64,000 bases of DNA from Diplonema japonicum (GCA_964019335.1 OZ025729.1:248001-312000); one strand, 5' to 3'; positions 2,898-61,910 are shown, numbered from the stretch's first letter. The notes: generated from the letters alone by a model not told the origin. Made by a program: numbers and translations.

Positions 2898-3439
2898 GCT
2901 AAGCCCGTTTACGCTTCATCCTTATATTACAAAAAAAAAAAGAAACAGAAAAAGAAAAAGAAAAAGAGAAATCACATCTATTTCTCTTTTTACTTGAACA
3001 AGAAAAGTGTTAATTGATAATGAATTGTTGTTTGCTATAAAAAAAAAAAAAAAAAAAAAAAGAGTAGTGGTAGCATTGTTGGGCAGTTTACAATCAACCG
3101 ACTCTTTTTATTCCAGTTCAGCAGGGCAGTATCTGCTTTACTTCAATATCACAGATAGCAAGCAGTGTTCTGAAACATACAAAAAGATACTTAGACGCTC
3201 CCACCAATGTGTTTAGCCCATTTCTTGGCACGTTGGTGACGGCTGCGACGATGCAGTATTTACCCTGCTTTTTTTTCTTGTCCCTATTTTATTCTCTCAT
3301 TTCTTGTATTGTTGAAAGATCGAATCAGCTGCAACGATGCAGTTTTTCTACGCTGGATTCCCCTTGACCTCTTTCACTACCAAAAAAAAAAACAATATTT
3401 CAAACCCGTTCAGTTTCGGTGGGAGAAAAGTGATAAAAC

Positions 3440-4277
3440 ATGTTCTCGAAGCACGATAGTTTTCCCACCGATGTCCTTGGGAGGATAGTGGGGTACATGG
3501 ACTTCTTGGACACTGTGAGGTGCAGCAGGGTGAGCACTGTGTGGAGGCAGTGCATGGGGGACATGATGGGTGACAAGGAGTCTGCCTTCATGAACAAGCA
3601 CTTTAAAAACTGTGAATGGGAGTCGTTGAAGAGTACTACAAACTGGGGCCCCGTTGTTGACAGGGGTGACCCGACAAACACCAGTTTCAAGTCGACAGTA
3701 GTGGGGACAAGAGGTTGTGGATCAACATTTCTGGTGGAGGCACTGGACACAGAAGCCGGTCAAACATTGGCCGAATATCCCGACAATAGGGATTGATTTC
3801 AGGCTAAAGACACTCATCAACCCTGAGGCAAAGCCTGAGATCCTCGGCAAGCTGCAGCTGTGGGACATGTCGGCAGGCAAGGAGCGCTTCAGAGCACTCA
3901 CTCGTAATTACTATCGTTTCAGCAACATCCACCTTCTTGTTTACAACACTTCCTCCGACAGCGGCTTTGAAGATATTGTGTACGAGCTGGAGCTGGTGAA
4001 CGACGCAATCTGTGCACCATGCATTTTGGTGGGCACGATGTGTGACCTCCCCCCCAACCCGCTGACAGCCAACCTCGCCTGCTGCCTTGCACATATTTTG
4101 CGCATCCCTCATGTCAGGACATCGGCAGTCACGGGGGAGGGCATACCCACGTTGTTGGAGCTCGTGACCGGGCAGTGCGTAAAGATTGCTTCCAAACGGC
4201 GACTCGCTGTAGGTGGCACAACTGGGGAACAGAAGCCTGAAGCACCTCAAAAGAAGAAGCTGTGCAGTGTTCAGTGA
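3440..4277 (+). pseudogene. F-box/Rab-like pseudo-GTPase-CaaX gene, copy 1 (frameshifted near 3750-3790)
   Basis: ORFs 3440-3796 (F-box, P-loop) and 3717-4277 (IGIDF, KLQLWD, YYR, KKKLCSVQ) together match the intact paralogues. The frameshift could be an assembly error. Confidence 0.8.
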
Positions 4278-4303
4278 CACACTTTCATTTTCATAAATCA
4301 CGG

Positions 4304-4830
4304 TGTCACAGCATACATGCCCTTCTTAAAAATAAAAACCGCGTCACCTGCTGTTACATCCCGGGTCACTGCGGAATAGAAGGTAACGAGAAGGCAGATG
4401 AACTCGCCGAGCAAGGTAGGGATAAGGAAACTACGCAAAGGGTAAGCCTGAACGCGGCGAAGAGCTACCTGCAGAAGACGACGAAGGCGGAGATAAGAGC
4501 AGAACTCGATAAAAGTCAAGAAATAAACAAGTTAGAGAGGCACCGAAGCGGATGGAAGGGCTTAGCAAACGCGAAGAAGTGCTAGTAAACCAGCTAAAGA
4601 CTGGTCATCGTCACCTGCTCAAAGAGGAGTACGCAACCGGGTTTTGCGGCGGACAGAGACAAGAACTACGACATCCACACGCTGGAGCACATCCTCATCA
4701 AAGACCCGAAGAGGGCAATCAGGTTCCTCGAGGGCACCGAAGAGACTACTGACAAGCCCACCGACTAACCCCCACCGACTAACCCCCACCGACTAACCCC
4801 CACCGACTAGCCGTCTACCTAGCAAGCCAT
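4304..4830 (+). mobile_element. 5'-truncated I/Ingi-clade-like LINE fragment (RNase H C-terminus and 3' tail)
   Basis: YIPGHCGIEGNEKADELA (RNase HI motif), then LSKREEVLVNQLKTGH, frameshifts, and a 14-bp tandem-repeat tail CCCCCACCGACTAA x~4 (4757-4810). Confidence 0.8.
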
Positions 4831-5211
4831 TAAGCAAGGCAGGAAGAAAACAAATCAGGTAATATGTAAACAAATAGAAAAAAAAGAAAAAGAAATAACA
4901 TAAACCCCAACAACACATCCCCCCCACGTGCATCAATCAATATAAAAGAAAAAGCAATCCTGAGGACTGACAACCAAAGGAAGAAAAAAAAGAGAAAAAA
5001 AAAGAGAAAAAAGGCCATTAGCCAACTGTGTGGAAAGAGAATACCCATGTCACGAAAGGTGCTAGAACAATAACACAGGCTGACACGAAAGCACGAACGT
5101 CTCAACACACTTCCGTTGGCTCCACACAGCCCAGCTGGGTGGGGTCGGTCTGGCTAGACCAAGAGGAGGTGGAATTTAAAAAAAAGAAAAAATCACGGAA
5201 CTCACCCGGAC

Positions 5212-5284
5212 CCAACTGGGGAACAGATCAGAAGAAGAAGCTGTGCAGTGTTCAGTGACACACTTTCAGTTTCATAAATCACGG
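5212..5284 (+). pseudogene. 3'-terminal remnant of an F-box/Rab gene (KKKLCSVQ*)
   Basis: Duplicates ~4220-4303, including the CaaX codons, stop and 3' flank. Confidence 0.7.
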
Positions 5285-5473
5285 ACCACTCCTGGATCTG
5301 CGAGAATGGCTTCGAGAATCTGCAGTGCGGGGACATCAAGCACCGTCCCTCTCAAACCCAAATCGAGACTGGCAGGAAAAACGAATATGAATACTAAAAT
5401 GAAGAAAAATCTCCGTCCTCCAGCCTTAAACACTTAAACCCCAGTATTTTAAAGGGCCCAAAAGAAGCACTCC

Positions 5474-5507
<34 letters not shown>

Positions 5508-5529
5508 TAGCTAATTCTTTCTTTCAGAA

Positions 5530-5925
5530 AGGATCCACATGGATGGTGAAGACCTAGCGAGCTGGGCAAGAAAAATCGGCGGAATCCTAAGAGTTTTGGA
5601 CAGGATTCACCCAAAAGGGCACGGGGAGTCACCTGATTCCAGCAGAACCTAAGAAATCAGTACACTCTTTGCGTACCCTAGGGCTCCACAGCCATCCCAT
5701 CACTGGGTACTCCACTCGACCGGTCTCGCATCCCCGAAGGTCACCCACCCTATCCTAGAGGAACAGTTACGAACTCATTGCATCCTCAACAACTCGCTAG
5801 TTGGTTTCACGCCCAAGCTGTTGAATAGATAGGGCCTAAGGCACTACCACGACAGAAGGGATCAAACACTAGATGAGTTGATTGTCATTAGGCGATCCTG
5901 TCACATACTGCAGGTTCCCTCAAAG
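5530..5925 (+). mobile_element. Degenerate retroelement 3' remnant
   Basis: Ends in CCTGTCACATACTGCAGGTTCCC, the 3' tail motif also at 22563, 23924 and 48046. Confidence 0.4.
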
Positions 5926-6007
5926 ACACCTTTCTTTTTAACTTGTTTGACCTTACACCCAACCACGATTCTACCGTTGTTGCAATTCAGTTTCCATAAG
6001 GAGAAAC

Positions 6008-6841
6008 ATGTTCTCGAAGCGTGAAAGGTTCCCGTTTCCCACCGATGTCCTTGGGAGGATAGTGGAGTACATGGACTTCTTGGAAACTGTGAGGTGCAGC
6101 AGGGTGAGCACTGTGTGGAGGCAGTGCATGGGGGACATGATGGGTGACAAGGAGTCTGCCTTCATGAACAAGCACTTTAAAAACTGTGAATGGGAGTCGT
6201 TGCAAAGTACTTCAAGTGGGGGGCCCGTTGTTGACAAGGGTGACTTCAAGGTGACGGTGTTGGGGGCAACGGGTTGCGGATCAACATTTCTGGTGGAGGC
6301 ACTGGACACAGAGCAGCCGGTCAAGCAAAGGGAGTATCGATCGACTATGATGGTTGATTTCAAGGTAAAGACACTCATCAACCCTGAGGCAAAGCCCGAG
6401 ATCCTCGGCAAGCTGCGGCTGTGGGACAAACCGGCAGGCATTGAGTGCTACAGCAGAATAATCACCCGCATGTACTTCCGTCTCAGCAACATCTGCCTTC
6501 TTGTTTACAACACTTCCTCCGACGGCGGTTTTGAGAATTTTGTGCACGAGCTGAAGAAAAACTTAATCTGTGCACAATGCATTTTGGTGGGCACGATGTG
6601 TGACCTCCCCCCCAACCCGCTGACAGCCAACCTCGCCTGCTGCCTTGCACATGTTTTGCGCATCCCTCATGTCAGGGCATCGGCAGTCACGGGGGAAGGC
6701 ATACCTAAGTTGCTTGAGCTCGTGACCGGGCAGTGTGTAAGGGTTTCTTCCGAACGGCGACAGCGACTCGCTGTAGGTGGCACAACTGAGGAACAGAAGC
6801 CTGAAGCACCTCAAAAGAAGAAGCTGTGCAGTGTTCAGTGA
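6008..6841 (+). CDS. F-box + Rab-like pseudo-GTPase with polybasic CaaX, copy 2 (intact, 277 aa)
   Basis: F-box PTDVLGRIVEYMDFLETVRCSRVSTVWRQ; G1 GATGCGST; KLRLWD; G4 TMCD; G5 SAV; C-terminal KKKLCSVQ. Confidence 0.9.
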   Translation: MFSKRERFPFPTDVLGRIVEYMDFLETVRCSRVSTVWRQCMGDMMGDKESAFMNKHFKNCEWESLQSTSSGGPVVDKGDFKVTVLGATGCGSTFLVEALDTEQPVKQREYRSTMMVDFKVKTLINPEAKPEILGKLRLWDKPAGIECYSRIITRMYFRLSNICLLVYNTSSDGGFENFVHELKKNLICAQCILVGTMCDLPPNPLTANLACCLAHVLRIPHVRASAVTGEGIPKLLELVTGQCVRVSSERRQRLAVGGTTEEQKPEAPQKKKLCSVQ

Positions 6842-7119
6842 CACACTTTCCTCGCCCCCCCTGCCGTGAGGCAAAAGGGGTCAAGGTACCTCCCTGCCTT
6901 TGTTGTGCGTTTCATTGTTTTGATAATGAATTGTTATTGCTAAAAGAGTAGTTGCAAGGTTAACTGGCTGTGCAACGAACAAACAATCAACCGACGCGTG
7001 TAGTTGTTTTATAGTAAGTAAGCTTTTGCCCTTTTTTTATACGTTCTTCCCACCTGGCCATCTCTTTTGTGATGAACGACGGTAAATTAAATCAGCTGGT
7101 AAATCGGCTGATGTTTATT

Positions 7120-7410
7120 TCCTCAGTGGCTCGGAAAGCTGAAGTAACCGAGGAAGACGACAGTCACCACAATGGAACTCGTACTAGACTTCGAGAACAC
7201 GCTGGGCGTCGAGCCGATCACGGGTAAGAAGGGTGATCTGGCCATGATACAGAAGAAGGCACGGAGTTTCCACGGCCTCCTGGAGAGAATCCAAGGTGGG
7301 ACACAGCACGCACACAGAAGAAGGTCAGAGGCAAGCGGATCTTCCCAGCGGAGTGGGATGGAACAGAAGGCCAGTTTTTGCATCAGAGAAAACCAAGAAG
7401 GACCTTAAGA
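7120..7410 (+). mobile_element. LINE C-terminal coding remnant (MELVLDFENTLG)
   Basis: Peptide resembles VELALDFENVTG (~22970) and MELALDFETT (~51223). Confidence 0.45.
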
Positions 7411-7487
7411 AACTGGGAAAGAAGAAAGAGAGGATACTTTGAGAAAGGCAACACAGCCAAAAAAGAAAGAAAGGCCCCATTGAACGC

Positions 7488-7572
7488 CGAGGCCCCAGAA
7501 GGGAGAAAGGGGTAGATAAGTAGAGACAAGGGGGACGTTCCAAGACAGGAACCTCCTTTATCTCATCTCTTA
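7488..7572. repeat. ~85-bp dispersed repeat family C
   Basis: GGCCCCAGAAGGGAGAAAGGGGTAGATAAGTAGAGACAAGGGGGACGTTCC also at 44933-45020, partially at 47639-47692 and degenerate at ~10813. Confidence 0.75.
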
Positions 7573-7649
7573 TTTTCTTTTTTTCATTTTCCTATCATCC
7601 TTAATTCTATCTGTTCTTTCTCCACCCTTGTTTTTGATAGGGATATTGT

Positions 7650-7860
7650 GGATGTGTTGTTCGCTGTTGACCTCCTCGTCGGTCATCACCGGTAGCACTC
7701 TAGTGGAAGAACGTATTGCAGGTGCGAACAGGCAGCAAACTGCGGGGTTGAGCTGTACACCGCACGCATTACGGACACGACGCGGAACGCAGAAGAAGCT
7801 ACAACTCGGCCGAGGTGCGACCCCTTTAATAAAGTAGACAGTATGGTGCCACCAACACGC
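7650..7860 (+). mobile_element. HDV-ribozyme-headed SINE, copy lacking the P1 5' strand
   Basis: GCTGTTG-ACC-TCCTCGTC-GGT-CATCACC-GG...CGAA-CAGGCAGC, followed by the shared body GACACGACGCGGAACGCAGAAGAAGCT. Confidence 0.75.
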
Positions 7861-8128
7861 TTCCTCTTCTCGTGTATAACTTATCGAGTTTCCACTTTTT
7901 TCACCACTTTTTTTTTGCTTGAACAAGAAATGCAATACCAGAGAGATTTCAAAACTGGGGTAGCGGATCGCATTTAGTCTGGCCGAACAGGTTTGAAGCT
8001 CACTCCAATTCTGGAACATAAGAGCTATGAGATCGATTTTCTTTTAATTGTTCGTACTTTTCTCTCTCTCTCCTTTCGATCTTGTTTTGATCTTACAGCA
8101 GAAGTAATTTCAATATGCAGGGAGAAAC

Positions 8129-8950
8129 ATGTTCTCAAAGCGTAAAAGGTTCCAGTTTCCCACCGATGTCCTTGGGAGGATAGTGGAGTACATGGACTTC
8201 TTGGACACTGTGAGGTGCAGCAGGGTGAGCACTGTGTGGAGGCAGTGCATGGGGGACATGATGGGTGACAGGGAGTCTGCCTTCATGAACAAGCACTTTA
8301 AAAACTGTGAATGGGAGTCGTTGCAAAGTACTGCAAACTGGGGGCCCGTTGTTGACAAGGGTGACCCGACAAACACCTGTTTCAAGGTGACAGTGGTGGG
8401 GACAAGAGGTTGTGGATCAACATCTCTGGTGGAGGCACTGGACACAGAGCAGCCGGTCAAACAAAGGCCGTATCGATCGACAATAGGGATTGATTTCAGG
8501 CTAAAGACACTCATCAACCAAGAGCTCGTCGGCAAGCTGCAGCTGTGGGACAAACCGGCAGGCAAGGAGCGCTTTACTACAATCACCCACATGTACTCCC
8601 GTCTCAGCACCATGCACCTTCTTGTTTACAACACTTCCTCCGACAGCGGTTTTGAGGAATTTGTGTACGAGCTGAAGAACTACTCAATCTGTGCACCATG
8701 CATTTTGGTGGGCACGATGTGTGACCTCCCCCCCAACCCGCTGACAGCCAACCTCGCCTGCTGCCTTGCACATATTTTGCGCGTCCCTCATGTCAGGACA
8801 TCGGCAGTCACAGGGGAGGGCATACCCAAGTTGTTGGAGCTCGTGACCGGGCAGTGTGTAAAGATTGCTTCCGAACGGCGACAGCGACTCGCTGTAGGTG
8901 GCACAACCGAACAGAAGCCTCAAAAGAAGAAGCTGTGCAGTGTTCAGTGA
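8129..8950 (+). CDS. F-box + Rab-like pseudo-GTPase with polybasic CaaX, copy 3 (intact, 273 aa)
   Basis: Same architecture; G1 GTRGCGST, RabF1 IGIDF, RabF2 KLQLWD, KKKLCSVQ. Confidence 0.9.
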   Translation: MFSKRKRFQFPTDVLGRIVEYMDFLDTVRCSRVSTVWRQCMGDMMGDRESAFMNKHFKNCEWESLQSTANWGPVVDKGDPTNTCFKVTVVGTRGCGSTSLVEALDTEQPVKQRPYRSTIGIDFRLKTLINQELVGKLQLWDKPAGKERFTTITHMYSRLSTMHLLVYNTSSDSGFEEFVYELKNYSICAPCILVGTMCDLPPNPLTANLACCLAHILRVPHVRTSAVTGEGIPKLLELVTGQCVKIASERRQRLAVGGTTEQKPQKKKLCSVQ

Positions 8951-9310
8951 CACACTTTGTTGGTTCATTGAATTTTCTTTTTTTTTTAAAAAAGAGTAGT
9001 GGTGAGCATTGTTGGGCTTATAGGTGATAGGTAATATTTTGCTTTTTTTCTTTTAAGTTATTTCTTTCTCCCCTGGCCTCCCTTATTTATTTATGATGAC
9101 CATAAAGACGGCCACTATTTTTTGCTTGTAGTAATCGAAATAAAAAAAAATAAAACGTTATGCTTAAAGAAACTTTTCCGTGTGAAAGTCCTATTGTGAA
9201 AGCATCGCTTTTTTTTTCTTCTACTTCTTCTTTTTCCTATTCTTTTAACCTATCCCCCTTTTATTCTATCTCTAAGGATCTTTCTCCCCCCCACCCCCCC
9301 CTTTTTTTTT

Positions 9311-9480
9311 GGTGGTGGGGATTAGCTAAGGAAGACAAAGAAGTACATCAGATGTGTTGTTTGCTGTTGATGCTCAAGGTGACGAACAAGCAGCAAACTG
9401 CACGAGTTAAGAAAAAGAACGCATACCAAGAGTTAAGGACAAGACGCGGAACGCAGAAGAAGCTACAACTCGGCCAAGCC
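9311..9480 (+). mobile_element. HDV-ribozyme SINE copy with core deletion
   Basis: Starts GGTGGTG; keeps GCTGTTG and GACGAACAAGCAGC, lacks P3/L3; shared body follows. Confidence 0.65.
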
Positions 9481-9754
9481 CACTAGCAGCCATAATCTCG
9501 TAGGCATAATCTCGCAGCCATAATCTCGTACTTAAATTATCGAGTCTTTATTTTATTCTTTTTTCTTGAACAAGAAAAGCAACCAAAGAAAAAATGCCCC
9601 TACCATGCCTGAGAGGTTTGAAGCTCACTCCAATTCTGGAACATAAGAAGTTTTAACATCGATTTTCTTTTACTTGTTCGTACTTTTCTCTTTCTCTCCT
9701 TTCGATCTTGTTTTGACTTTACAGCAGAAGTAGTTTCCATATGCAGGGAGAAAC

Positions 9755-10575
9755 ATGTTCTCAAAGCGTGAAACATCCCCGTTTCCCACCGATGTCCTTG
9801 GGAGGATAGTGGAGTACATGGATTTCTTGGAAACTGTGAAGTGCAGCAAGGTGAGCACTGTGTGGAGGCAGTGCATGGGGGACATGATGGGTGACAAGGA
9901 GTCTGCCTTCATGAACAAGCACTTCAAAGACTATGAATGGGAGTCGTTGCAAAGTACTGCAAGCTGGGGGCCCGTTGTTGACAAGGGTGACCCGACAAAC
10001 ACCAGTTTCAAGATGACAATGGTGGGGCAACGGGTTGTGGATCAACATCTCTGGTGGAGGCACTGGACACAGAGCAGCCGATAAACATTAAGAAGCATAA
10101 TCCTTTGCGTACAGGGCTTTACAGGTCAAAGACACTCATCAACCCGGAGGCAAAGCCTGAGATCGGCAAGCTGCAGCTGTGTGACAAGCTTGCAGGCATA
10201 TCCCATATGTGCCACTCGCGTGGCAACATGCACTTCCACCGGAGCAACATCCACCTTCTTGTTTACAAGTCCTCCGACAGCGGTTTTGAAGATTTCGTGC
10301 ACAAACTGAAAAACGGATCGATAAATGCACCATGCATTTTGGTGGGCACGATGTGTGACCTCCCCCCCAACCCGCTGCAGCCAACCTCGCCTGCTGCCTT
10401 GCACATGTTTTGCGCATCCCTCATGTCAGGACATCGGCAGTCACGGGTGAGGGCATACCCAAGTTGTTGGAGCTCGTGACCGGGCAGTGTGTAAGGGTTT
10501 CTTCCGAACGGCGACGGCGACTCGCTGTAGGTGGCACAACCGAGGAACAGAAGCATTAAGCACCTCAAAAGAAGA
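9755..10575 (+). pseudogene. F-box/Rab pseudo-GTPase copy 4, pseudogene
   Basis: Two or more frameshifts (~10025, ~10377); 3' end diverges before the CaaX codons. Confidence 0.85.
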
Positions 10576-11113
10576 GAGGCTCCATGGCATCCTCCCAACA
10601 GCGGAGCTGAGGAGGTTCCGCGGCAACATTCACGAAGCCGGTGCTGAAGTAACTAAGGCAACTCCGATGGCGTGGAGGGAGCAGGAACATGGCAGTGTAG
10701 ACGGTGAAGAGCTGCTGAAGGGTGATAGGGCGGGTGGAGGAACATCAAGTGTCGAGGATAGGAGAAGGCCGGCACGACCGCTGCTGAAAGGGATAGGTGC
10801 AGGTAGAAGATGAGAACAAGGGGGCGTCTCACAATCCTTTAACTCATATTATCTTTCTCTTATCTTAGAATAATCTATCTCCCTTCGTTCTATCTTTTGA
10901 ATCTCCCCACCCTTTATTTTTTCTTGAACAAGAACGACAACCCCAGAGGGATTTCGAACAGGGGTAGCATGGATCGCATTTAGCCTAGGCTAAAGAAAAG
11001 ATGCCCCTACCATGCCCGAGAGGTTTGAAGCTCACTCCAATACTGGCACATAAGAGTTTTAAGATCGATTTTCTTTTACCTGTTTGTACAGTTCAGTTTC
11101 CATAAAGAGAAAC

Positions 11114-11950
11114 ATGTTCTCGAAGCGTGAAAGGTTCCCGTTTCCCACCGATGTCCTTGGGAGGATAGTGGAGTACATGGACTTCTTGGACACTGTGAGG
11201 TGCAGCAAGGTGAGCACTGTGTGGAGGCAGTGCATGGGGGACATGATGGGTGACAAGGAGTCTGCCTTCATGAACAAGCACTTCAAAGACTATGAATTGG
11301 AGTCGTTGAAAAGTACTACAAACTGGGGCCCCGTTGTTGACAAGGGTGACCCGACAGACATCAATTCCAAGGTGACAATGGTGGGGACAAGAGGTTGTGG
11401 ATCATCAATTCTGGTGGAGGCACTTCACACAGAGCAGCCAGTCAACATTAGGGAGTATCGACCGACAATAGGGGTTGATTTCAAGGTAAAGACACTCATC
11501 AACCCTGAGGCAAAGCCTCCTGTGACCCTCGGCAAGCTGCAGCTGTGGGACAAACCGGTAAAGAAAAACGACTTCAGAGCACTTTGCCGAATGAAGTATC
11601 GCCTGAGCAACATGCACCTTCTTGTTTACAACACTTCCTGCGGTTTTGAGAATTTTGTGAACGAGCTGAAGAACGACGCAATCTGTGCACCATGCATTTT
11701 GGTGGGCACGATGTGTGACCTCCCCCCCAACCCGCTGACAGCCAACTTCGCCTGCTGCCTTGCACATGTTTTGCGCATCCCTCATGTCAGGACATCGGCA
11801 GTCACAGGGGAGGGCATACCCACGTTGTTGGAGCTCGTGACCGGGCAGTGTGTAAGGGTTGCTTCCAAACGGCGACTCGCTGTAGGTGGCACAACTGAGG
11901 AACAGAAGCCTGAAGCACCTCAAAAGAAGAAGCTGTGCAGTGTTCAGTGA
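11114..11950 (+). CDS. F-box + Rab-like pseudo-GTPase with polybasic CaaX, copy 5 (intact, 278 aa from ATG 11114)
   Basis: Same architecture; G1 GTRGCGSS, IGVDF, KLQLWD, TMCD, KKKLCSVQ. Confidence 0.9.
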   Translation: MFSKRERFPFPTDVLGRIVEYMDFLDTVRCSKVSTVWRQCMGDMMGDKESAFMNKHFKDYELESLKSTTNWGPVVDKGDPTDINSKVTMVGTRGCGSSILVEALHTEQPVNIREYRPTIGVDFKVKTLINPEAKPPVTLGKLQLWDKPVKKNDFRALCRMKYRLSNMHLLVYNTSCGFENFVNELKNDAICAPCILVGTMCDLPPNPLTANFACCLAHVLRIPHVRTSAVTGEGIPTLLELVTGQCVRVASKRRLAVGGTTEEQKPEAPQKKKLCSVQ

Positions 11951-11976
11951 CACACTTTCTTTAAGGCGACTTCTTA

Positions 11977-12815
11977 GGTGACAAAGAGTCTGCCTTCATG
12001 AACAAGCACTTCAAAGACTATGAATGGGAGTCGTTGCAAAGTACTGCAAGCTGGGGGTCCGTTGTTGACTGGGGCAGCCCGACAACCAACATTTTCCAGG
12101 TGACATTGGTGGGGACAAGAGGTTGTGGATCAACATGATCAGACTAGAACAGCCGCCCCGGGGCATCCTCTGCTCAACCCGGCGGACGTGGGAGGCCCTT
12201 CTTCGGAAGGTGCCAGTCGCTTGATCAGTGCCGTCGAATGCGCGCTATATTTTATAAGTACATATAGCAATCGATTGAAAGAAAAAGAACGCGTACCAAG
12301 AGGTTGTGGATCAACTAGTGGAGGCACTGGACACAGAGCAGGGATTTGTTTAAAGGAAAAGACACTCATCAACACAGAGGCAAAGCCTGAGATCCTCGGC
12401 AAGCTGCGGCTGTGGGAGCCGGCAGGCAAGGAGCACTTCAGAGCACTCACTATTGACTGTTCCAGCTTCAACTTCCGTCTCGGTCGTTTCAGCAACATCC
12501 ACCTTCTTGTTTACAACACTTCTTCCGACAGCGGTTTTGAAGATTTTGTGTACGAGCTGAAGAACGACGCAATCTGTGCACCATGCATTTTGGTGGGCAC
12601 GATGTGTGACCTCCCCCCCAACCCGCTGACAGCCAACCTCGCCTGCATATTTTGCGCATCCCTCATGTCAGGACATCGGCAGTCACGGGGGAGGGCATTG
12701 GAGCTCGTGACCAAACAATGTGTAAGGGTTGCTTCCGAACGGCGACGGCACAACTGGGAACAGCAGAGACGACTACAGAACCCTAAAAAGAAGAAGCTGT
12801 AAAGTGTTCAGTGAC
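11977..12815 (+). pseudogene. F-box-less copy 6 of the Rab-like gene, disrupted by a SINE insertion
   Basis: Begins at the GDKESAFMNKH codons, interrupted at 12135-12296, with frameshifts and TGC>TAA at the CaaX Cys. Confidence 0.8.
12135..12296 (+). mobile_element. Family A SINE, 5'-truncated, with 19-bp target-site duplication
   Basis: CAAGAGGTTGTGGATCAAC at 12116-12134 and again at 12297-12315. Confidence 0.85.
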
Positions 12816-13147
12816 ACACTTTGTTGTTTCACTTGAATTTTCGTCTTTTTTTGTTTGTTTCGATAATGAAATTGTTTTCTAGTTAAAAAAAGAATAGTGG
12901 TAAGCATTGTTGGGCTTACAGGTTAACCCAGACTTGTGGGGGTTTATCTTTTGCTTTTTTTTTTTTAAAAAAAGGGGGTTTTTTTTTTTTTTTTCCTCCC
13001 TGGCCTTTCTTATTTCTTATGACGACCGCCTTAAGAAGAAAAAGAAAAATGGAAATGCGGTATGCTTTTTTTTTTTAGTTTTATACCCGATACGACACAA
13101 AAAGCAAAAGGTTCTTTATTTTTTTTTTTTCCCCTTCTTCTTTTTTT

Positions 13148-13911: not shown

Positions 13912-14898
13912 ATGACCCCGTACATATGGGAGAGCAGTATCGAAGGGATTCTAAAGAAGAAAAAAGCGGGCGGAAAGGCTGTGTACAAAGTACAGTGGGC
14001 CTGCGGGGAGGAAGGTTGGGTAGAGGAAGGCGACTTAGAAGAGGAAGGGTACTACTGGATGATGCACGCCTACGACGCGAAGAAAAAAGAAGACAAAACC
14101 CCTCGAAAACTCCGGAAGAAATACAAGCAAAGCTACGGGAGGATTGCTCCACTGCCTCCCCTGCCACCCCGCGAAGCCCCCTGGCCGACTCAGCCAGCCC
14201 GTACTCGCCTTCCACCACCCAGTGCCACAGTGACATGGGACTCCATCTTCTACACAAAAAAGCAACGGACGAAAAAACAACCCGCCGTAAAAATCCAAAA
14301 AATAACAAGAGCTGACGACAGATCAGCCATGTCGCTCGCACAAAACTTGCGTAGTAGCAGCCCTGGGTGCATGATGCTGGAGGCACCCGGAATGCTGGGG
14401 GATCCTTGGGAACTCTTTCCCGATCTGATCAGAGATCTTGTAAAGCGTTTCAGCCTTGCGTCGCACCTTCGCCCTACCAACGTTTTTAATGTCCTTCGGC
14501 GCGACAGGATGAAGGAATTCCAAAGGCGGTACGACGGCGAGGCTGAGATGGTTTTCCACGGAACGCCGACCATAGAAAACATGGACGGCATCATTTCACG
14601 TGGATTACGAATCCCAGGTGTCGGAAGGGATCCTGTCAGAATGCTTCACGGAGCGGTCAATGGGCAAGGTGTCTACACTGCTACTTGTCCGGCCGTGCCC
14701 AGCGGTTACTGTCGGGGTCAGAACGCCATGTTCATCTGTGCGGCCGCGGGGACGCACCACCGGTCGGGGAACGTTCGCGTGTACAGGGAGGCAGGTTCAG
14801 TGATCCCCGTTGCGCTCGTCTCGTTCGTGTACTCATTTTCCCCCGAAAGCTGGGACGGCCCTCCTTCCTTCCACAACCGCATTCCATGTTCAGAATAA
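13912..14898 (+). CDS. Chromodomain + PARP-like ADP-ribosyltransferase domain protein (328 aa)
   Basis: Chromo-like IEGILKKK...YKVQW...EGWVEEGDL; Pro-rich linker; ART motifs MVFHGT, GQGVYTA, SGYC, MFIC, VYxxxxSVIP. Confidence 0.8.
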   Translation: MTPYIWESSIEGILKKKKAGGKAVYKVQWACGEEGWVEEGDLEEEGYYWMMHAYDAKKKEDKTPRKLRKKYKQSYGRIAPLPPLPPREAPWPTQPARTRLPPPSATVTWDSIFYTKKQRTKKQPAVKIQKITRADDRSAMSLAQNLRSSSPGCMMLEAPGMLGDPWELFPDLIRDLVKRFSLASHLRPTNVFNVLRRDRMKEFQRRYDGEAEMVFHGTPTIENMDGIISRGLRIPGVGRDPVRMLHGAVNGQGVYTATCPAVPSGYCRGQNAMFICAAAGTHHRSGNVRVYREAGSVIPVALVSFVYSFSPESWDGPPSFHNRIPCSE

Positions 14899-51465: not shown

Positions 51466-51706
51466 ATTGCACCATATTCCACCCCTTTTTATCTTTTTTT
51501 TCGCTTCTCTATTCTGACTTAAAATCATTTCAGGTACCTAATACATTGCGAGAAACATTAGGGTTAGTAACAAAAGGATCCCTTCAAACAGCAGCGTTGT
51601 CCACTCTCTTACTCTTTTCCCTGCCCTTTTTTTGCTTTCATTTTTTTCCTTCCAGCTTCATGGCATCACTAACCAAGCATCTCAGTTTCTACTACAACAA
51701 AGCACC

Positions 51707-54700
51707 ATGAAGGGTAATAACATATTACATACCCTTTCCTTAGCCTTCTTTGTTACAAGAGCATCTGGAATATGCCCCAGTGAGGCACCCTCCTTCGACA
51801 GGGAAGCCGGCACACCTTATTCATGCTCCTCATCCACAACAGACGACGTACACCTGTACTGGACAGTGGATGGGGCAGCTGTTCACATGGCACTGACGGC
51901 GAAGGATGTGTCTGGGTGGCTCTCGATCGGATTTGCTGAGACTCGTGGTAGGATGGACCCTGCTGATTCGCTGTCAGGGTATGGGATGAATGTGAGCACT
52001 CAGAAGCTTCTTGCTGGCTACGATGTGAGCGAGGATAACACTGTTCTCACTGACATCACGAACAGGGAGATCTCCACCCTCACCATCGGGGGTGAGTCTT
52101 ACCGTGTCTTGAGGTTTACGAGAACGCTTGTGAGCATCCCCTCTGGTGTCCTCTCTTTGAACTATGCTTATCACAACACATCCAACACCTTCCCTTCTCT
52201 TCACACCTCGAGGGGTGGCTGGAAGTCCGATTTAATGATTGCAAATGCACCTGTGAATCCTCTGTGCCCCAGTGAGGCACCCTCCTTCGACAGGGAAGCC
52301 GGCACACCTTATTCATGCTCCTCATCCACAACAGACGACGTACACCTGTACTGGACAGTGGATGGGGCAGCTGTTCACATGGCACTGACGGCGAAGGATG
52401 TGTCTGGGTGGCTCTCGATCGGATTTGCTGAGACTCGTGGTAGGATGGACCCTGCTGATTCGCTGTCAGGGTATGGGATGAATGTGAGCACTCAGAAGCT
52501 TCTTGCTGGCTACGATGTGAGCGAGGATAACACTGTTCTCACTGACATCACGAACAGGGAGATCTCCACCCTCACCATCGGGGGTGAGTCTTACCGTGTC
52601 TTGAGGTTTACGAGAACGCTTGTGAGCATCCCCTCTGGTGTCCTCTCTTTGAACTATGCTTATCACAACACATCCAACACCTTCCCTTCTCTTCACACCT
52701 CGAGGGGTGGCTGGAAGTCCGATTTAATGATTGCAAATGCACCTGTGAATCCTCTGTGCCCCAGTGAGGCACCCTCCTTCGACAGGGAAGCCGGCACACC
52801 TTATTCATGCTCCTCATCCACAACAGACGACGTACACCTGTACTGGACAGTGGATGGGGCAGCTGTTCATATGGCACTGACGGCAAAGGATGTGTCTGGG
52901 TGGCTCTCGATCGGATTTGCTGAGACTCGTGGTAGGATGGACCCTGCTGATTCACTGTCAGGGTATGGGATGAATGTGAGCACTCAGAAGCTTCTTCCTG
53001 GCTACGATGTGAGCGAGGATAACACTGTTCTCACTGACATCACGAACAGGGAGATCTCCACCCTCACCATCGGGGGTGAGTCTTACCGTGTCTTGAGGTT
53101 TACGAGAACGCTTGTGAGCATCCCCTCTGGTGTCCTCTCTTTGAACTATGCTTATCACAACACATCCAACACCTTCCCTTCTCTTCACACCTCGAGGGGT
53201 GGCTGGAAGTCCGATTTAATGATTGCAAATGCACCTGTGAATCCTCTGTGCCCCAGTGAGGCACCCTCCTTCGACAGGGAAGCCGGCACACCTTATTCAT
53301 GCTCCTCATCCACAACAGACGACGTACACCTGTACTGGACAGTGGATGGGGCAGCTGTTCACATGGCACTGACGGCGAAGGATGTGTCTGGGTGGCTCTC
53401 GATCGGATTTGCTGAGACTCGTGGTAGGATGGACCCTGCTGATTCACTGTCAGGGTATGGGATGAATGTGAGCACTCAGAAGCTTCTTGCTGGCTACGAT
53501 GTGAGCGAGGACAACACTGTTCTCACTGACATCACGAACAGGGAGATCTCCACCCTCACCATCGGGGGTGAGTCTTACCGTGTCTTGAGGTTCACGAGAA
53601 CGTTGGTGAGCATCCCCTCTGGTGTCCTCTCTCTGAACTATGCTTATCACAACACATCCAACACCTTCCCTTCTCTTCACACCTCGAGGGGTGGCTGGAA
53701 GTCTGAGTTGCAGATCAACGGAACTGCACCAGTTATAATGCCAACTACGCCAACACCAATGACGACTTGCCCCAGTGAGGCACCCTCCTTCGACAGGGAA
53801 GCCGGCACACCTTATTCATGCTCCTCATCCACAACAGACGACGTACACCTGTACTGGACAGTGGATGGGGCAGCTGTTCACATGGCACTGACGGCGAAGG
53901 ATGTGTCTGGGTGGCTCTCGATCGGATTTGCTGAGACTCGTGGTAGGATGGACCCTGCTGATTCACTGTCAGGGTATGGGATGAATGTGAGCACTCAGAA
54001 GCTTCTTCCTGGCTACGATGTGAGCGAGGACAACACTGTTCTCACTGACATCACGAACAGGGAGATCTCCACCCTCACCATCGGGGGTGAGTCTTACCGT
54101 GTCTTGAGGTTCACGAGAACAGTCGCAAGCATCCCTTCTGGTGTCCTCTCTGTTAACTATGCTTTCCATTCTACATCCAACACCTTCCCATCTATTCACA
54201 CCTCGAGGGGTGGCTGGAAGTCGGACCTACAGCTGGACAGCACTCTACCAACATCCCTTCCCACCCCCACGACGGAGGCCCCCACGGGACCCCCAGCAGG
54301 GTGCACGCCCTCGACACTCCCTGAGTTCAGGTGCATGGAAACGATCGACACGAAGACAGTGCTACACTGGACGACCCTGTCAAACGGGACAGTGGATGCG
54401 CAGCTTGTCGTTGCCCAGAACTCAGCAGGGTGGTGCTCTGTGGGGCTTCCCATCAACGGGTTCGACATGATCGGTGCGAAGGCATTGGTGTCGGACGGGC
54501 TGATCTACGACATGAATGGGAAGACCTCTGCCAGCATTGTGCAGACGGGGGACAGGGGCGGCTTCAGGCAGGTGGCGGCGACAACAAGGTCCTTCCGAAA
54601 GGCAGCTGTGGCACAAGTGTCCGGGGACCAGGTGCTGCGCTTCTCGACGGACGTGGGAACGGCGGCGGGGGCGCAGCTGAGCCTCATCGTTGGTTACCAT

Positions 54701-55405
54701 GGGTCCTCGTCTGCCTTCCCTGCAACTATTCACTCGGCACGCTACGGTCTGCGGGTGTCGGCAACGGGAGGCGGACTGGAAGCGATTGCTGACAACACGG
54801 AGAAGGTGAAGGCTCACAGCGGGGTGATGGTTGCGGTGTGGGCGTACGTGGTCCCCTTTGCTATCCTGCTGAAGAGGTTCGGGACGGACCTTCTGGGAAC
54901 TGTCTGGGGCTACCCTGTCGCCTTCATCCTTCACGGGGTGCTGATGTTGGGGAGCGCCATCACCACATCCATCTTCAGTGCAGTGGCCTTCAAGGAGTTC
55001 CGTGGGGACGCACAGCACTACCACAAGGAACTGGGGAACGCACTCCTCGTGGTGATGTGGGTTCAGGTGGTTCTGGGTCTTGCTGCCCCGGCGAAGGACT
55101 CACAGCTCAGGATCCCGTTCGTGGTCTCGCACACTGTGCTTGGGATTGCATCCTTTGGGATGGCCATCGGGCAGATGGAGTCGGGGCTGAGGAACGTGGA
55201 GGAGTTGTACACGGAGAGCATGAAGAATGATCTATTGACTGCCATGATAGTTGGGCTGTGTTGCTCGGCTGCATTGTGTCTTGTCTTCTTTGTTATGAAG
55301 AAAATGTGTACTCGCAGAATGGCCGTTCTACCAGGTGATGAAAACAAGGGTTCTCCACAAGTACCTGATGACGAAGACGAAGAAGTTATTACAGCCGTTG
55401 TTTGA
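51707..55405 (+). CDS. DOMON x6 + cytochrome b561 protein (ferric-chelate reductase / CYBDOM family), 1232 aa
   Basis: Signal peptide; five near-identical ~164-aa DOMON repeats (LYWTV, GWLSIGF, M and H heme ligands) plus one divergent DOMON; b561 His motifs AHS, LHG, YHK, SHT. Confidence 0.9.
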   Translation: MKGNNILHTLSLAFFVTRASGICPSEAPSFDREAGTPYSCSSSTTDDVHLYWTVDGAAVHMALTAKDVSGWLSIGFAETRGRMDPADSLSGYGMNVSTQKLLAGYDVSEDNTVLTDITNREISTLTIGGESYRVLRFTRTLVSIPSGVLSLNYAYHNTSNTFPSLHTSRGGWKSDLMIANAPVNPLCPSEAPSFDREAGTPYSCSSSTTDDVHLYWTVDGAAVHMALTAKDVSGWLSIGFAETRGRMDPADSLSGYGMNVSTQKLLAGYDVSEDNTVLTDITNREISTLTIGGESYRVLRFTRTLVSIPSGVLSLNYAYHNTSNTFPSLHTSRGGWKSDLMIANAPVNPLCPSEAPSFDREAGTPYSCSSSTTDDVHLYWTVDGAAVHMALTAKDVSGWLSIGFAETRGRMDPADSLSGYGMNVSTQKLLPGYDVSEDNTVLTDITNREISTLTIGGESYRVLRFTRTLVSIPSGVLSLNYAYHNTSNTFPSLHTSRGGWKSDLMIANAPVNPLCPSEAPSFDREAGTPYSCSSSTTDDVHLYWTVDGAAVHMALTAKDVSGWLSIGFAETRGRMDPADSLSGYGMNVSTQKLLAGYDVSEDNTVLTDITNREISTLTIGGESYRVLRFTRTLVSIPSGVLSLNYAYHNTSNTFPSLHTSRGGWKSELQINGTAPVIMPTTPTPMTTCPSEAPSFDREAGTPYSCSSSTTDDVHLYWTVDGAAVHMALTAKDVSGWLSIGFAETRGRMDPADSLSGYGMNVSTQKLLPGYDVSEDNTVLTDITNREISTLTIGGESYRVLRFTRTVASIPSGVLSVNYAFHSTSNTFPSIHTSRGGWKSDLQLDSTLPTSLPTPTTEAPTGPPAGCTPSTLPEFRCMETIDTKTVLHWTTLSNGTVDAQLVVAQNSAGWCSVGLPINGFDMIGAKALVSDGLIYDMNGKTSASIVQTGDRGGFRQVAATTRSFRKAAVAQVSGDQVLRFSTDVGTAAGAQLSLIVGYHGSSSAFPATIHSARYGLRVSATGGGLEAIADNTEKVKAHSGVMVAVWAYVVPFAILLKRFGTDLLGTVWGYPVAFILHGVLMLGSAITTSIFSAVAFKEFRGDAQHYHKELGNALLVVMWVQVVLGLAAPAKDSQLRIPFVVSHTVLGIASFGMAIGQMESGLRNVEELYTESMKNDLLTAMIVGLCCSAALCLVFFVMKKMCTRRMAVLPGDENKGSPQVPDDEDEEVITAVV

Positions 55406-59113: not shown

Positions 59114-59723
59114 TTAATTAAAAAAAAAAAAAAAAAAAAACAAGAAGAATCCAAAAAAGAAACTGAGGTCGGTTTCACGTTTCTTTTTAATTTATTTATT
59201 ATTATTATTTTTTTTCTTTTTTTTTTTTTTTTTGTTACAATTATTTCAAAAAATGATTTTATAACTATATGCAACTTGTGCCGAGCAAAAAACTTTCGCA
59301 GCTTTTTAAAAAACCTTTTTGCTCGTGCGAACAACAAAGACATATAGTCATAAAGGATTATTTTTTAAATTACTTCACGTTAAATCACATTACTTCACGG
59401 TGAATTAACTTGGCTTGTTTTCCGTGAAGTAATAGGGGATTTCCGGTAAATAATATGCGCCAGTAGGCCAGTTTTTGCCTTGGTTCAGTTCCCAGTGGGG
59501 CAACTTTTTCCTCTCAGTTTGCCAATCCCCCCAGGTTCTCAATTGGCCAACTTTTTGCCTCGGCTCAGTACCAAGTTGGACTACTTTTTCCTCTCCTCCT
59601 ATATATCTTTTACAAATATCTTTCTCTTCCAATTCTTTTCTGCCCTTTTTGCTTTCATTTTTTTCCTTCTTGCTTCATGGCATCACTAACCAAGCATCTC
59701 AGTTTCTACTACAACAAAGCACC

Positions 59724-61910
59724 ATGAAGGGTAATAACATATTACATACCCTTTCCTTAGCCTTCCTTGTTACAAGAGCATCTGGAATATGCCCCAGTGA
59801 GGCACCCTCCTTCGACAGGGAAGCCGGCACACCTTATTCATGCTCCTCATCCACAACAGACGACGTACACCTGTACTGGACAGTGGATGGGGCAGCTGTT
59901 CACATGGCACTGACGGCGAAGGATGTGTCTGGGTGGCTCTCGATCGGATTTGCTGAGACTCGTGGTAGGATGGACCCTGCTGATTCGCTGTCAGGGTATG
60001 GGATGAATGTGAGCACTCAGAAGCTTCTTCCTGGCTACGATGGTAGGGAGGACGACACCATTCTAACTGACATCACGAACAGGGAGATCTCCACCCTCAC
60101 CATCGGGGGTGAGTCTTACCGTGTCTTGAGGTTCACGAGAACGCTTGTGAGCATCCCCTCTGGTGTCCTCTCTTTGAACTATGCTTATCACAACACATCC
60201 AACACCTTCCCTTCTCTTCACACCTCGAGGGGTGGCTGGAAGTCCGATTTAATGATTGCAAATGCACCTGTGAATCCTCTGTGCCCCAGTGAGGCACCCT
60301 CCTTCGACAGGGAAGCCGGCACACCTTATTCATGCTCCTCATCCACAACAGACGACGTACACCTGTACTGGACAGTGGATGGGGCAGCTGTTCACATGGC
60401 ACTGACGGCGAAGGATGTGTCTGGGTGGCTCTCGATCGGATTTGCTGAGACTCGTGGTAGGATGGACCCTGCTGATTCACTGTCAGGGTATGGGATGAAT
60501 GTGAGCACTCAGAAGCTTCTTCCTGGCTACGATGTGAGCGAGGACAACACTGTTCTCACTGACATCACGAACAGGGAGATCTCCACCCTCACCATCGGGG
60601 GTGAGTCTTACCGTGTCTTGAGGTTCACGAGAACAGTCGCAAGCATCCCTTCTGGTGTCCTCTCTGTTAACTATGCTTTCCATTCTACATCCAACACCTT
60701 CCCATCTATTCACACCTCGAGGGGTGGCTGGAAGTCGGACCTACAGCTGGACAGCACTCTACCAACATCCCTTCCCACCCCCACGACGGAGGCCCCCACG
60801 GGACCCCCAGCAGGGTGCACGCCCTCGACACTCCCTGAGTTCAGGTGCATGGAAACGATCGACACGAAGACAGTGCTACACTGGACGACCCTGTCAAACG
60901 GGACAGTGGATGCGCAGCTTGTCGTTGCCCAGAACTCAGCAGGGTGGTGCTCTGTGGGGCTTCCCATCAACGGGTTCGACATGATCGGTGCGAAGGCATT
61001 GGTGTCGGACGGGCTGATCTACGACATGAATGGGAAGACCTCTGCCAGCATTGTGCAGACGGGGGACAGGGGCGGCTTCAGGCAGGTGGCGGCGACAACA
61101 AGGTCCTTCCGAAAGGCAGCTGTGGCACAAGTGTCCGGGGACCAGGTGCTGCGCTTCTCGACGGACGTGGGAACGGCGGCGGGGGCGCAGCTGAGCCTCA
61201 TCGTTGGTTACCATGGGTCCTCGTCTGCCTTCCCTGCAACTATTCACTCGGCACGCTACGGTCTGCGGGTGTCGGCAACGGGAGGCGGACTGGAAGCGAT
61301 TGCTGACAACACGGAGAAGGTGAAGGCTCACAGCGGGGTGATGGTTGCGGTGTGGGCGTACGTGGTCCCCTTTGCTATCCTGCTGAAGAGGTTCGGGACG
61401 GACCTTCTGGGAACTGTCTGGGGCTACCCTGTCGCCTTCATCCTTCACGGGGTGCTGATGTTGGGGAGCGCCATCACCACATCCATCTTCAGTGCAGTGG
61501 CCTTCAAGGAGTTCCGTGGGGACGCACAGCACTACCACAAGGAACTGGGGAACGCACTCCTCGTGGTGATGTGGGTTCAGGTGGTTCTGGGTCTTGCTGC
61601 CCCGGCGAAGGACTCACAGCTCAGGATCCCGTTCGTGGTCTCGCACACTGTGCTTGGGATTGCATCCTTTGGGATGGCCATCGGGCAGATGGAGTCGGGG
61701 CTGAGGAACGTGGAGGAGTTGTACACGGAGAGCATGAAGAAAAATCTATTTGGTGCGATGATGGTAGGGCTGTGTTGCTCGGCTGTGTCATGGCTTATCT
61801 TCTTTGTTATGAAGAAAATGTGTACTCGCAGAATGGCCGTTCTACCAGATGAAAACAAAGGTTTCCCACAGATACCACGAGGGGAGGAAGTCACTACAAC
61901 CGTTGTTTAA
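59724..61910 (+). CDS. DOMON x3 + cytochrome b561 protein, paralogue (728 aa)
   Basis: Two copies of the 164-aa repeat, the divergent DOMON and b561; nearly identical to 51707-55405 except the C-terminal tail. Confidence 0.9.
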   Translation: MKGNNILHTLSLAFLVTRASGICPSEAPSFDREAGTPYSCSSSTTDDVHLYWTVDGAAVHMALTAKDVSGWLSIGFAETRGRMDPADSLSGYGMNVSTQKLLPGYDGREDDTILTDITNREISTLTIGGESYRVLRFTRTLVSIPSGVLSLNYAYHNTSNTFPSLHTSRGGWKSDLMIANAPVNPLCPSEAPSFDREAGTPYSCSSSTTDDVHLYWTVDGAAVHMALTAKDVSGWLSIGFAETRGRMDPADSLSGYGMNVSTQKLLPGYDVSEDNTVLTDITNREISTLTIGGESYRVLRFTRTVASIPSGVLSVNYAFHSTSNTFPSIHTSRGGWKSDLQLDSTLPTSLPTPTTEAPTGPPAGCTPSTLPEFRCMETIDTKTVLHWTTLSNGTVDAQLVVAQNSAGWCSVGLPINGFDMIGAKALVSDGLIYDMNGKTSASIVQTGDRGGFRQVAATTRSFRKAAVAQVSGDQVLRFSTDVGTAAGAQLSLIVGYHGSSSAFPATIHSARYGLRVSATGGGLEAIADNTEKVKAHSGVMVAVWAYVVPFAILLKRFGTDLLGTVWGYPVAFILHGVLMLGSAITTSIFSAVAFKEFRGDAQHYHKELGNALLVVMWVQVVLGLAAPAKDSQLRIPFVVSHTVLGIASFGMAIGQMESGLRNVEELYTESMKKNLFGAMMVGLCCSAVSWLIFFVMKKMCTRRMAVLPDENKGFPQIPRGEEVTTTVV

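Follow-up and report, generated by a model that had tools for sequence, protein, structure and literature searches.

A GTPase fold joined to a cullin-ligase adaptor has known precedents in FBXO4, Rab40, RhoBTB, TbFRP, a set of Legionella effectors and a protein of Paratrimastix. Here we describe a tandem gene array of the diplonemid Diplonema japonicum whose products consist of an F-box, a Rab-derived GTPase fold and a CaaX box ending in Q. The array lies in a 64,000-nucleotide stretch of DNA, referred to as the window (G000:C82:248001-312000; GCA_964019335.1 OZ025729.1), of a 62.5-Mb genome assembly with 132 contigs. The three-part architecture is real, and the family that it defines is real, diplonemid-specific and apparently undescribed; no description of it was found in the searchable literature.

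TbFRP (Tb927.7.3790) is a FYVE–F-box–Ras-like GTPase found across Euglenozoa (PMC3593210). It belongs to the same phylum as the array, has its F-box directly N-terminal to a Rab-related GTPase, and carries a membrane-targeting module in the same polypeptide. However, TbFRP has an N-terminal FYVE domain, a size of ~64 kDa and the C-terminus VLLD without a CaaX box, whereas the array family starts at the F-box, lacks FYVE, has a CaaX anchor and has no P-loop lysine. A FYVE domain gave no Pfam match in the array proteins, only ~7 open codons precede their ATG, and the complete open reading frame (ORF) of the homologue from D. ambulator also begins at the F-box. FRP was not among the best 150 HMMER matches, which gave no sign that it is closer to the family than ordinary Rabs are, and the two are compared here by description only. 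A longer F-box–Ras query returned other fusions and no FRP. We rejected an FRP orthologue in this genome, the sole FYVE plus F-box gene found being devoid of a GTPase domain; that gene, a 321-residue ORF (G000:C51:478193-479158; L025:1194-2159) with FYVE followed by the F-box, has half of the TbFRP layout.

FBXO4 (Fbx4) is a vertebrate substrate receptor of the Skp1–Cul1–F-box (SCF) ligase, and its substrate-binding module is an atypical small-GTPase domain (PMC7086354). By analogy it would be the best functional precedent for a dead GTPase that serves as bait, although it has no CaaX box and its sequence is not Rab-like. In the ESM atlas, FBXO4 clusters and a nematode Ras plus SOCS-box cluster were the nearest named neighbours of the family (score 0.81 for FBXO4), which is a lead only. 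None of the listed best Foldseek or VIA matches was an FBXO4 structure, and the resemblance is probably convergent. Rab40 (Rab with a SOCS box, Cul5) and RhoBTB (Rho with a BTB domain, Cul3) also fuse a small-GTPase fold to a cullin-adaptor motif, but they use another adaptor motif and another cullin and have the opposite domain order; Rab40 retains nucleotide binding. Neither SOCS_box (at E up to 1) nor BTB gave a Pfam match in the array proteins.

Membrane anchoring of an F-box protein by a CaaX box is known from yeast Rcy1 (PMC2175155) and from AnkB, a farnesylated F-box effector of Legionella (PMC7830128), and Roy1, also from yeast, is an F-box protein that acts on a Rab (PMC3084679). None of these three has a GTPase fold of its own. 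Further Legionella effectors combine Rab domains with an F-box or U-box (10.1101/350777), but these are bacterial proteins with conserved Rab features. The Paratrimastix pyriformis protein KAJ4456396 (P0059, annotated as 'putative rab-type small G protein') has an F-box, a linker of ~45 residues and a Ras-like domain with the P-loop GSAGTT, again without lysine, and is colinear with the family profile (hhalign probability 98.9%, E 1.9e-17, 221 columns; 24% identity). It differs in having three tandem units in one 732-residue model and no CaaX box, and is uncharacterised; the model may represent three merged genes. Other protist fusions place an F-box-like motif directly upstream of a Rab-like domain, among them proteins with an Asp/Arg-hydroxylase (P0103, P0162, P0164) or ankyrin repeats (P0161, P0167), but these have extra N-terminal domains, a P-loop lysine (GSGKS in P0103) and no such CaaX box, and are unrelated at the family level.

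An earlier interpretation of this DNA, made from the sequence alone and called the sequence-only reading below, had left FBXO4, TbFRP and other F-box–Ras fusions unconsidered, and its list of precedents was incomplete. The novelty was overstated: new in this family are the arrangement of its three parts, a dead P-loop conserved in all members and an array of variable copies, whereas GTPase folds fused to a cullin adaptor were already known. An SCF-adaptor role is plausible and less unprecedented than that reading held.

Genes in the window are tightly spaced, lie nearly all on the same strand and have few introns. Direct-repeat analysis and self-BLAST delimited six plus-strand copies spanning 3436-12822, and together with the ORFs and the repeat families D1–D6 they bore out the proposal of six copies, three of them intact, at 3440-12815. 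The first copy, W1 (3440-4277), is broken by a single 2-nt deletion near 3754 that leaves overlapping ORFs at 3440-3796 and 3717-4277; its C-terminus is KKKLCSVQ, and its identity to U1, an intact copy farther upstream, is 96.5%. W2 (6008-6841) is intact and encodes 277 residues, with the F-box at residues 11-41, the P-loop GATGCGST (6263-6286), the motifs TMMVDF and WDKPAG, GTMCD (6590-6604) and the terminal KKKLCSVQ (6815-6838). W3 (8129-8950), also intact, encodes 273 residues, with the F-box at residues 9-41 (8153-8251) and the Ras/Rab domain at residues 86-240 (8384-8848). The latter contains the P-loop GTRGCGST (8399-8422), TIGIDF (8480-8497), WDKPAG (8546-8563), GTMCD (8711-8725) and TSAV (8798-8809), and the protein ends in a polybasic tract and CaaX box, KKKLCSVQ (8924-8947). 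W4 (9755-10575) is broken by at least two 1-nt deletions, near 10028 and 10378, has a disrupted 3' end and carries unrelated sequence in place of the switch I and switch II patches. The third intact copy, W5 (11114-11950), encodes 278 residues, with the P-loop GTRGCGSS (11384-11407), TIGVDF, WDKPVK (11546-11563), GTMCD (11705-11719) and KKKLCSVQ (11924-11947). W6 (11965-12822) has many breaks and lacks its 5' end; its sequence sets in ~15 nt past the W5 stop, partway through the F-box/linker region.

A six-frame search of the whole genome located three further intact copies, U1, U2 and U3 (C82:239319-242712), 5-9 kb upstream of the window, and the whole array has nine members, six of them intact. 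The extent given by the sequence-only reading was thus correct for the copies inside the window and too small for the array, which continues upstream and has five paralogues elsewhere in the genome.

Scanning against profile models gave both predicted domains above the curated Pfam cut-offs (20.5 bits for F-box, 21.6 bits for Ras) in each intact copy, as the proposed F-box and Rab-like fusion required. The F-box (PF00646, residues ~9-41) scored 27.1-29.6 bits and the Ras domain (residues ~86-240) 46-69 bits in W2, W3 and W5; the F-box score of protein P0001 was 21.9 bits, and the D. ambulator homologue exceeded both cut-offs. A profile of the N-terminal 75 residues matched almost exclusively F-box proteins in the PDB (FBXL5, Skp2, FBXW8, FBXL3, Cdc4), at E-values of 0.015-1 that are marginal because the F-box is a motif of only 40 residues. 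With the profile of the family, the best PDB matches were Sec4, Rab1, Ypt1 and Rab35 (~75 bits), and KRas scored ~12 bits lower (62 bits). An AlphaFold2 (AF2) model based on the shallow family alignment had a mean predicted local distance difference test (pLDDT) score of 63, with 70-89 in the GTPase domain and 37-56 in the F-box region, where helices were placed at residues 12-29, 35-44 and 47-57. Foldseek and an exhaustive VIA search with this model returned small GTPases, the best being Sec4p (Z 17.2, root-mean-square deviation 3.5 over 166 residues), followed by Gem, Rab3C, Rab27a and Rab6. Since the profile, Foldseek and VIA searches all return Rabs or other small GTPases as best matches, the module is a Rab-derived GTPase fold, which is intact in the model, and the Rab signatures IGIDF, KLQLW, RF..IT and LLVY are readable in it.

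Judged as a working Rab, this module fails on its G motifs and on its C-terminal motif. The P-loop reads GATGCGST, GTRGCGST or GTRGCGSS in place of GxxxxGK[ST], without the lysine; G3 is altered to DKPAG, DMSAG or DKPVK, and G4 is GTMCD in place of NKxD. The sequence-only reading had described these changes, as well as IG[IV]DF, KLQLWD, LLVY and the KKKLCSVQ terminus, and we found them as described, the terminus in each intact copy. In full, switch I reads TIGIDF or TIGVDF (TMMVDF in W2), and KLRLWD occurs beside KLQLWD. In addition, G5 is TSAV where SAK is canonical. In an alignment of 12 family members the P-loop lysine was absent throughout (GCGS[TS], ECGST, GCGAT, GAGAT, VGGTT, SGCSS), its position being held by Ser, Ala or Thr. 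At G3, an inserted residue displaces the glycine or the glycine is lost. For G4, the array copies have TMCD, whereas TKxD occurs in the older paralogues and D. ambulator. All 12 proteins begin with the F-box, and other positions are invariant among them: the Pro and Asp of [FL]PxD[VA][LF], a V...W pattern, LLxYDTS, ILVGT.xD, PH[VI][RK]TS and the CaaX cysteine. Most members also keep residues that contact the nucleotide or Mg, namely the switch I Thr, the G1 Ser/Thr, the G3 Asp, the G4 Asp and the SA of G5. Taken over all motifs, the family is a predicted pseudoGTPase.

At the C-terminus, the CC/CxC motif for double geranylgeranylation of Rabs is not present in the family. The proteins instead end in single CaaX boxes (CSVQ, CVIQ, CCIQ, CCLM, CCVL), most of them farnesyl-type. 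The preferred X residues of trypanosome farnesyltransferase are Gln and Met. The KKK tract followed by CSVQ indicates that the array proteins carry a farnesylation signal by the sequence rule for CaaX boxes, in which X = Gln or Met specifies farnesylation (PMC7177374).

Beyond the array, the genome encodes five divergent paralogues at 30-44% identity, three on contig C69, of which two form a tandem pair, and one each on C21 and C86. The D. ambulator homologue has 275 residues and 41% identity, and it is transcribed, as its Trinity (transcriptome) ORFs are marked complete. Among 1.84 billion cluster representatives, a full HMMER search recovered this protein as the sole true relative, and a family-profile search of 5.8 billion proteins gave the same single relative and added nothing. 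A metagenome scan with family patterns yielded 25 loci, none of which has an F-box and all of which encode ordinary Ras/Rab domains, and a single-sequence, word-based protein search found no relatives. In a maximum-likelihood tree the array copies formed one clade (support 99/97), with the other members branching deeper in an order that was not resolved. The array is, on this evidence, a lineage-specific expansion. Because the paralogues and the D. ambulator homologue all lack the P-loop lysine and carry the CaaX cysteine, both the degeneration of the nucleotide site and the prenylation signal are ancestral to the family and maintained in it. Two of the paralogues lack most of the interswitch region. 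Those on C21 and C86 (L009:1348-2277, minus strand; L018:1138-1914, plus strand) keep the CaaX cysteine (CSKE, CSIA) and have no stop codon after the box; they read on for 40 hydrophobic and 29 lysine-rich residues, respectively. In these two genes prenylation has been lost, or the extension reflects an unrecognised intron or an assembly error.

We tentatively favour, at somewhat less than even chances, a function as a farnesylated, membrane-bound SCF adaptor whose only candidate substrate-recognition module, and only globular part besides the F-box, is the nucleotide-independent Rab-like fold. This is the best-supported of the readings considered, and it restates the sequence-only reading more modestly. 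The protein would be farnesylated and seated at a membrane, and its F-box would dock it to Skp1–Cul1. The Rab-like domain, independent of nucleotide, would then act as the substrate-recognition module of the membrane-bound ligase, a role suggested by the parallel with the atypical GTPase domain of FBXO4 and the GTPase domain in Rab40/Cul5. Individual copies would probably recognise different partners, since they share the F-box and C-terminal halves and differ in the former switch I/II surface. For the array proteins, association with Skp1/Cul1, farnesylation, an inability to bind GTP and a role as ligase adaptor are inferred, as is the proposal of the sequence-only reading that the Rab fold is a decoy for Rab regulators or pathogen effectors. 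Candidate partners are present: four Skp1 loci (including Skp1 in the region G000:C33:491587-493481), several cullins and prenyltransferase alpha-subunit (PPTA) repeats are encoded in the genome, and 10 of its 36 F-box matches belong to the array family.

Several points weigh against an SCF adaptor. The locus was not found in any indexed run recorded as RNA, and the runs that contain it behave as DNA: coverage by runs X2-X4 extends over genes and spacers alike, as DNA from the source organism would. Three copies out of nine are broken, and the AF2 model has low confidence in its F-box region. The guanine- and Mg-contacting residues that are kept may leave room for some nucleotide binding, and the substitution pattern described below would be explained as well by relaxed constraint on dead switch loops. 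Finally, Rcy1 is an F-box protein with a CaaX box that acts outside SCF (PMC2175155).

The last point leads to an alternative that we consider unlikely, in which the array proteins form a non-SCF Skp1 complex in membrane traffic and the prenylated pseudo-Rab is a scaffold or a competitive inhibitor of Rab pathways, without ubiquitylation. Rcy1p links an F-box and a CaaX box to endosomal recycling (PMC2175155), and Roy1 binds and inhibits the Rab5-like Ypt52 in a Skp1-dependent, non-SCF manner (PMC3084679). The array proteins would be suited to such a task by the Rab signatures that they keep (IGxDF, KLQLW, RF..T, LLVY), but the genome does encode cullins. Moreover, the family-invariant F-box Pro and the Asp two residues on are positions that we take to contact Cul1 in Skp2, which also counts against a non-SCF complex. 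No result of this analysis separates the SCF and non-SCF readings.

It is likewise improbable that the F-box serves self-regulation by rapid turnover, with the membrane-bound Rab-like domain as the functional part of the protein. The authors of the TbFRP study suggest that its F-box may couple TbFRP to rapid proteolysis (PMC3593210), and the order of F-box and GTPase is the same in the array. Turnover would, however, leave two features unexplained, the loss of switch chemistry in every member and a divergence that falls mainly on the former effector surface. F-box autoubiquitylation, moreover, normally accompanies adaptor function and does not replace it.

The divergence among the copies is uneven along the gene. 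DNA identity is 94-99% at the ends (F-box and C-terminal half) versus 64-85% in the switch segment, and in the alignment short, densely substituted patches at the P-loop entry, switch I and switch II stand within near-identical surroundings. The proportions of synonymous (pS) and non-synonymous (pN) differences among array copies follow the same course: pS 0.049 and pN 0.034 in the F-box region, 0.048 and 0.035 in the C-terminal half, and 0.237 and 0.231 in the segment from switch I through the interswitch to switch II. Hence pN/pS is 0.7-1.2 in every region, pS co-varies with pN, and the whole-gene ratio of non-synonymous to synonymous rates (dN/dS) among intact copies is 0.67-1.11. Nearest neighbours shift by segment, U2 being closest to W5, W2, U1, W3 and U1 in turn. 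The array is a gene-conversion mosaic in which the ends are homogenised and the middle escapes. Positive selection as a demonstrated claim was rejected, with pN/pS at ~1 everywhere and pS raised together with pN; a site test for it would be confounded by recombination. The mosaic would fit diversifying selection on a binding surface and neutral drift of jobless switch loops combined with identity-dependent conversion alike.

Such a pattern could also arise in a recently expanded and largely functionless array that decays by birth and death, with its conserved ends the product of gene conversion only. The dN/dS values, a pS as low as pN in the conserved ends, the segment-wise change of neighbours, the three broken copies and the spacers full of retroelements and repeats would all be expected from such decay, yet we regard it as quite unlikely. 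The intact genes carry 25-61 substitutions each relative to the majority sequence, and the joint chance that all six remain free of stops under random substitution is ~2e-5, with the copies treated as independent. All of the ~11 indels among the intact copies are multiples of three. Switch I (TIGxDF) is near that of the D. ambulator protein in U1, W1, W3 and W5, and switch II (WDxPxGKERxR, as in D. ambulator) is kept in U1 and W3, less well in W1 and not in W5 (WDKPVKKNDF). The open frames, in-frame indels and switch motifs shared with D. ambulator argue for selection on the protein and against simple decay. Further against decay, the architecture and motif state persist at 30-44% identity in the five paralogues and in the transcribed D. 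ambulator gene.

A working nucleotide switch with a non-canonical P-loop, that is, a regulated Rab-like GTPase fused to an F-box as in TbFRP, also appears to us rather improbable. It would account for the kept residues of G1, switch I, G3, G4 and G5 in most members, and for the TKxD of the older paralogues and D. ambulator, a G4 form known from Rho-family GTPases. It is opposed by the replacement of the P-loop lysine in all 12 aligned members, by the displaced G3 glycine, by the loss of the G4 lysine across the array, and by the two paralogues without most of the interswitch region.

An elaboration of the SCF-adaptor reading, which we judge very unlikely, is that the array is a diversifying panel of decoy Rabs, anchored at membranes and linked to SCF, in which each copy would offer its own pseudo-switch surface and trap Rab-grabbing proteins for ubiquitylation; it is compatible with, though not specifically supported by, the switch I/II-focused divergence, homogenised flanks, maintained open frames and birth-and-death turnover, and D. 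japonicum carries the intracellular bacteria Ca. Cytomitobacter and Ca. Nesciobacter (PMC13598402), but that effectors of intracellular bacteria, for example, would be the targets, and the panel a protist analogue of plant integrated-decoy immune receptors, is similarly far-fetched.

If the array proteins are SCF adaptors, diplonemids, which are among the most abundant marine heterotrophic protists, would have evolved a counterpart to Rab40/Cul5 and RhoBTB/Cul3 that is of the Cul1 type. They would also possess a counterpart of FBXO4, either independent or very old, that carries a lipid anchor and occurs as an array of variable copies; at ~275 residues it would be a compact, tractable model of how a dead GTPase fold comes to serve recognition. 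Taken with TbFRP, the protein of Paratrimastix and the other fusions, the family suggests that the pairing of an F-box with a Rab-like domain immediately downstream recurs in protists as a little-studied module. Even if they are not SCF adaptors, the array and its relatives would be a clear, long-kept pseudoGTPase family that shows concerted evolution sparing one surface.

Matches to the array were also found in run X1, which comes from another organism and is only guessed to be RNA. Short contigs of this run are 95-99% identical to the window at 8646-8736, 9767-10018, 10464-10562 and 11178-11292. They cover coding parts of the array and repeats only, with nothing in unique spacers, and a single contig joins 8646-8736 to 10464-10562. 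The source of these matches is probably either transcripts or a related copy carried by a relative.

A 5'-truncated retroelement fragment (4303-5226, plus strand), which includes an RNase H piece (4262-4585), sits at the 3' end of W1 as an insertion bounded by a direct duplication of 57 bp (4246-4302 and 5227-5283, 96.5% identical), which repeats the last codons and the stop of W1. An additional KKKLCSVQ at 5235-5258 was considered as a seventh gene and rejected, as it is the duplicated target site of this insertion. Between array units, homology is largely confined to coding sequence, and in most pairs of copies it begins ~5-10 nt before the ATG. The pairs U1/W1, U2/W2, U3/W5 and W3/W4 share longer upstream stretches, which suggests segmental duplication followed by turnover of the spacers. 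A retroposed origin of the copies, by way of spliced-leader or poly-A transcripts, was rejected, neither a leader nor a poly-A signature being seen.

The spacers at 7160-7960, 8960-9560 and 10760-10960 are very high-copy interspersed repeats, with a summed contig word depth 100-1000x that of the flanking genes in three DNA runs. At two intergenic sites most contigs of the DNA runs are one base off the assembly, with a base missing at 9004/9005 (9004-9005) and a G added after 10789. These differences are possible homopolymer errors or polymorphisms, and none was reported within the coding sequences compared. Just downstream of the array, a 328-residue ORF (13912-14898) matches the PARP catalytic domain with 40 bits. 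Farther along the window, two large ORFs (51632-55405 and 59475-61910) encode multiple DOMON domains and a cytochrome b561-like C-terminus.

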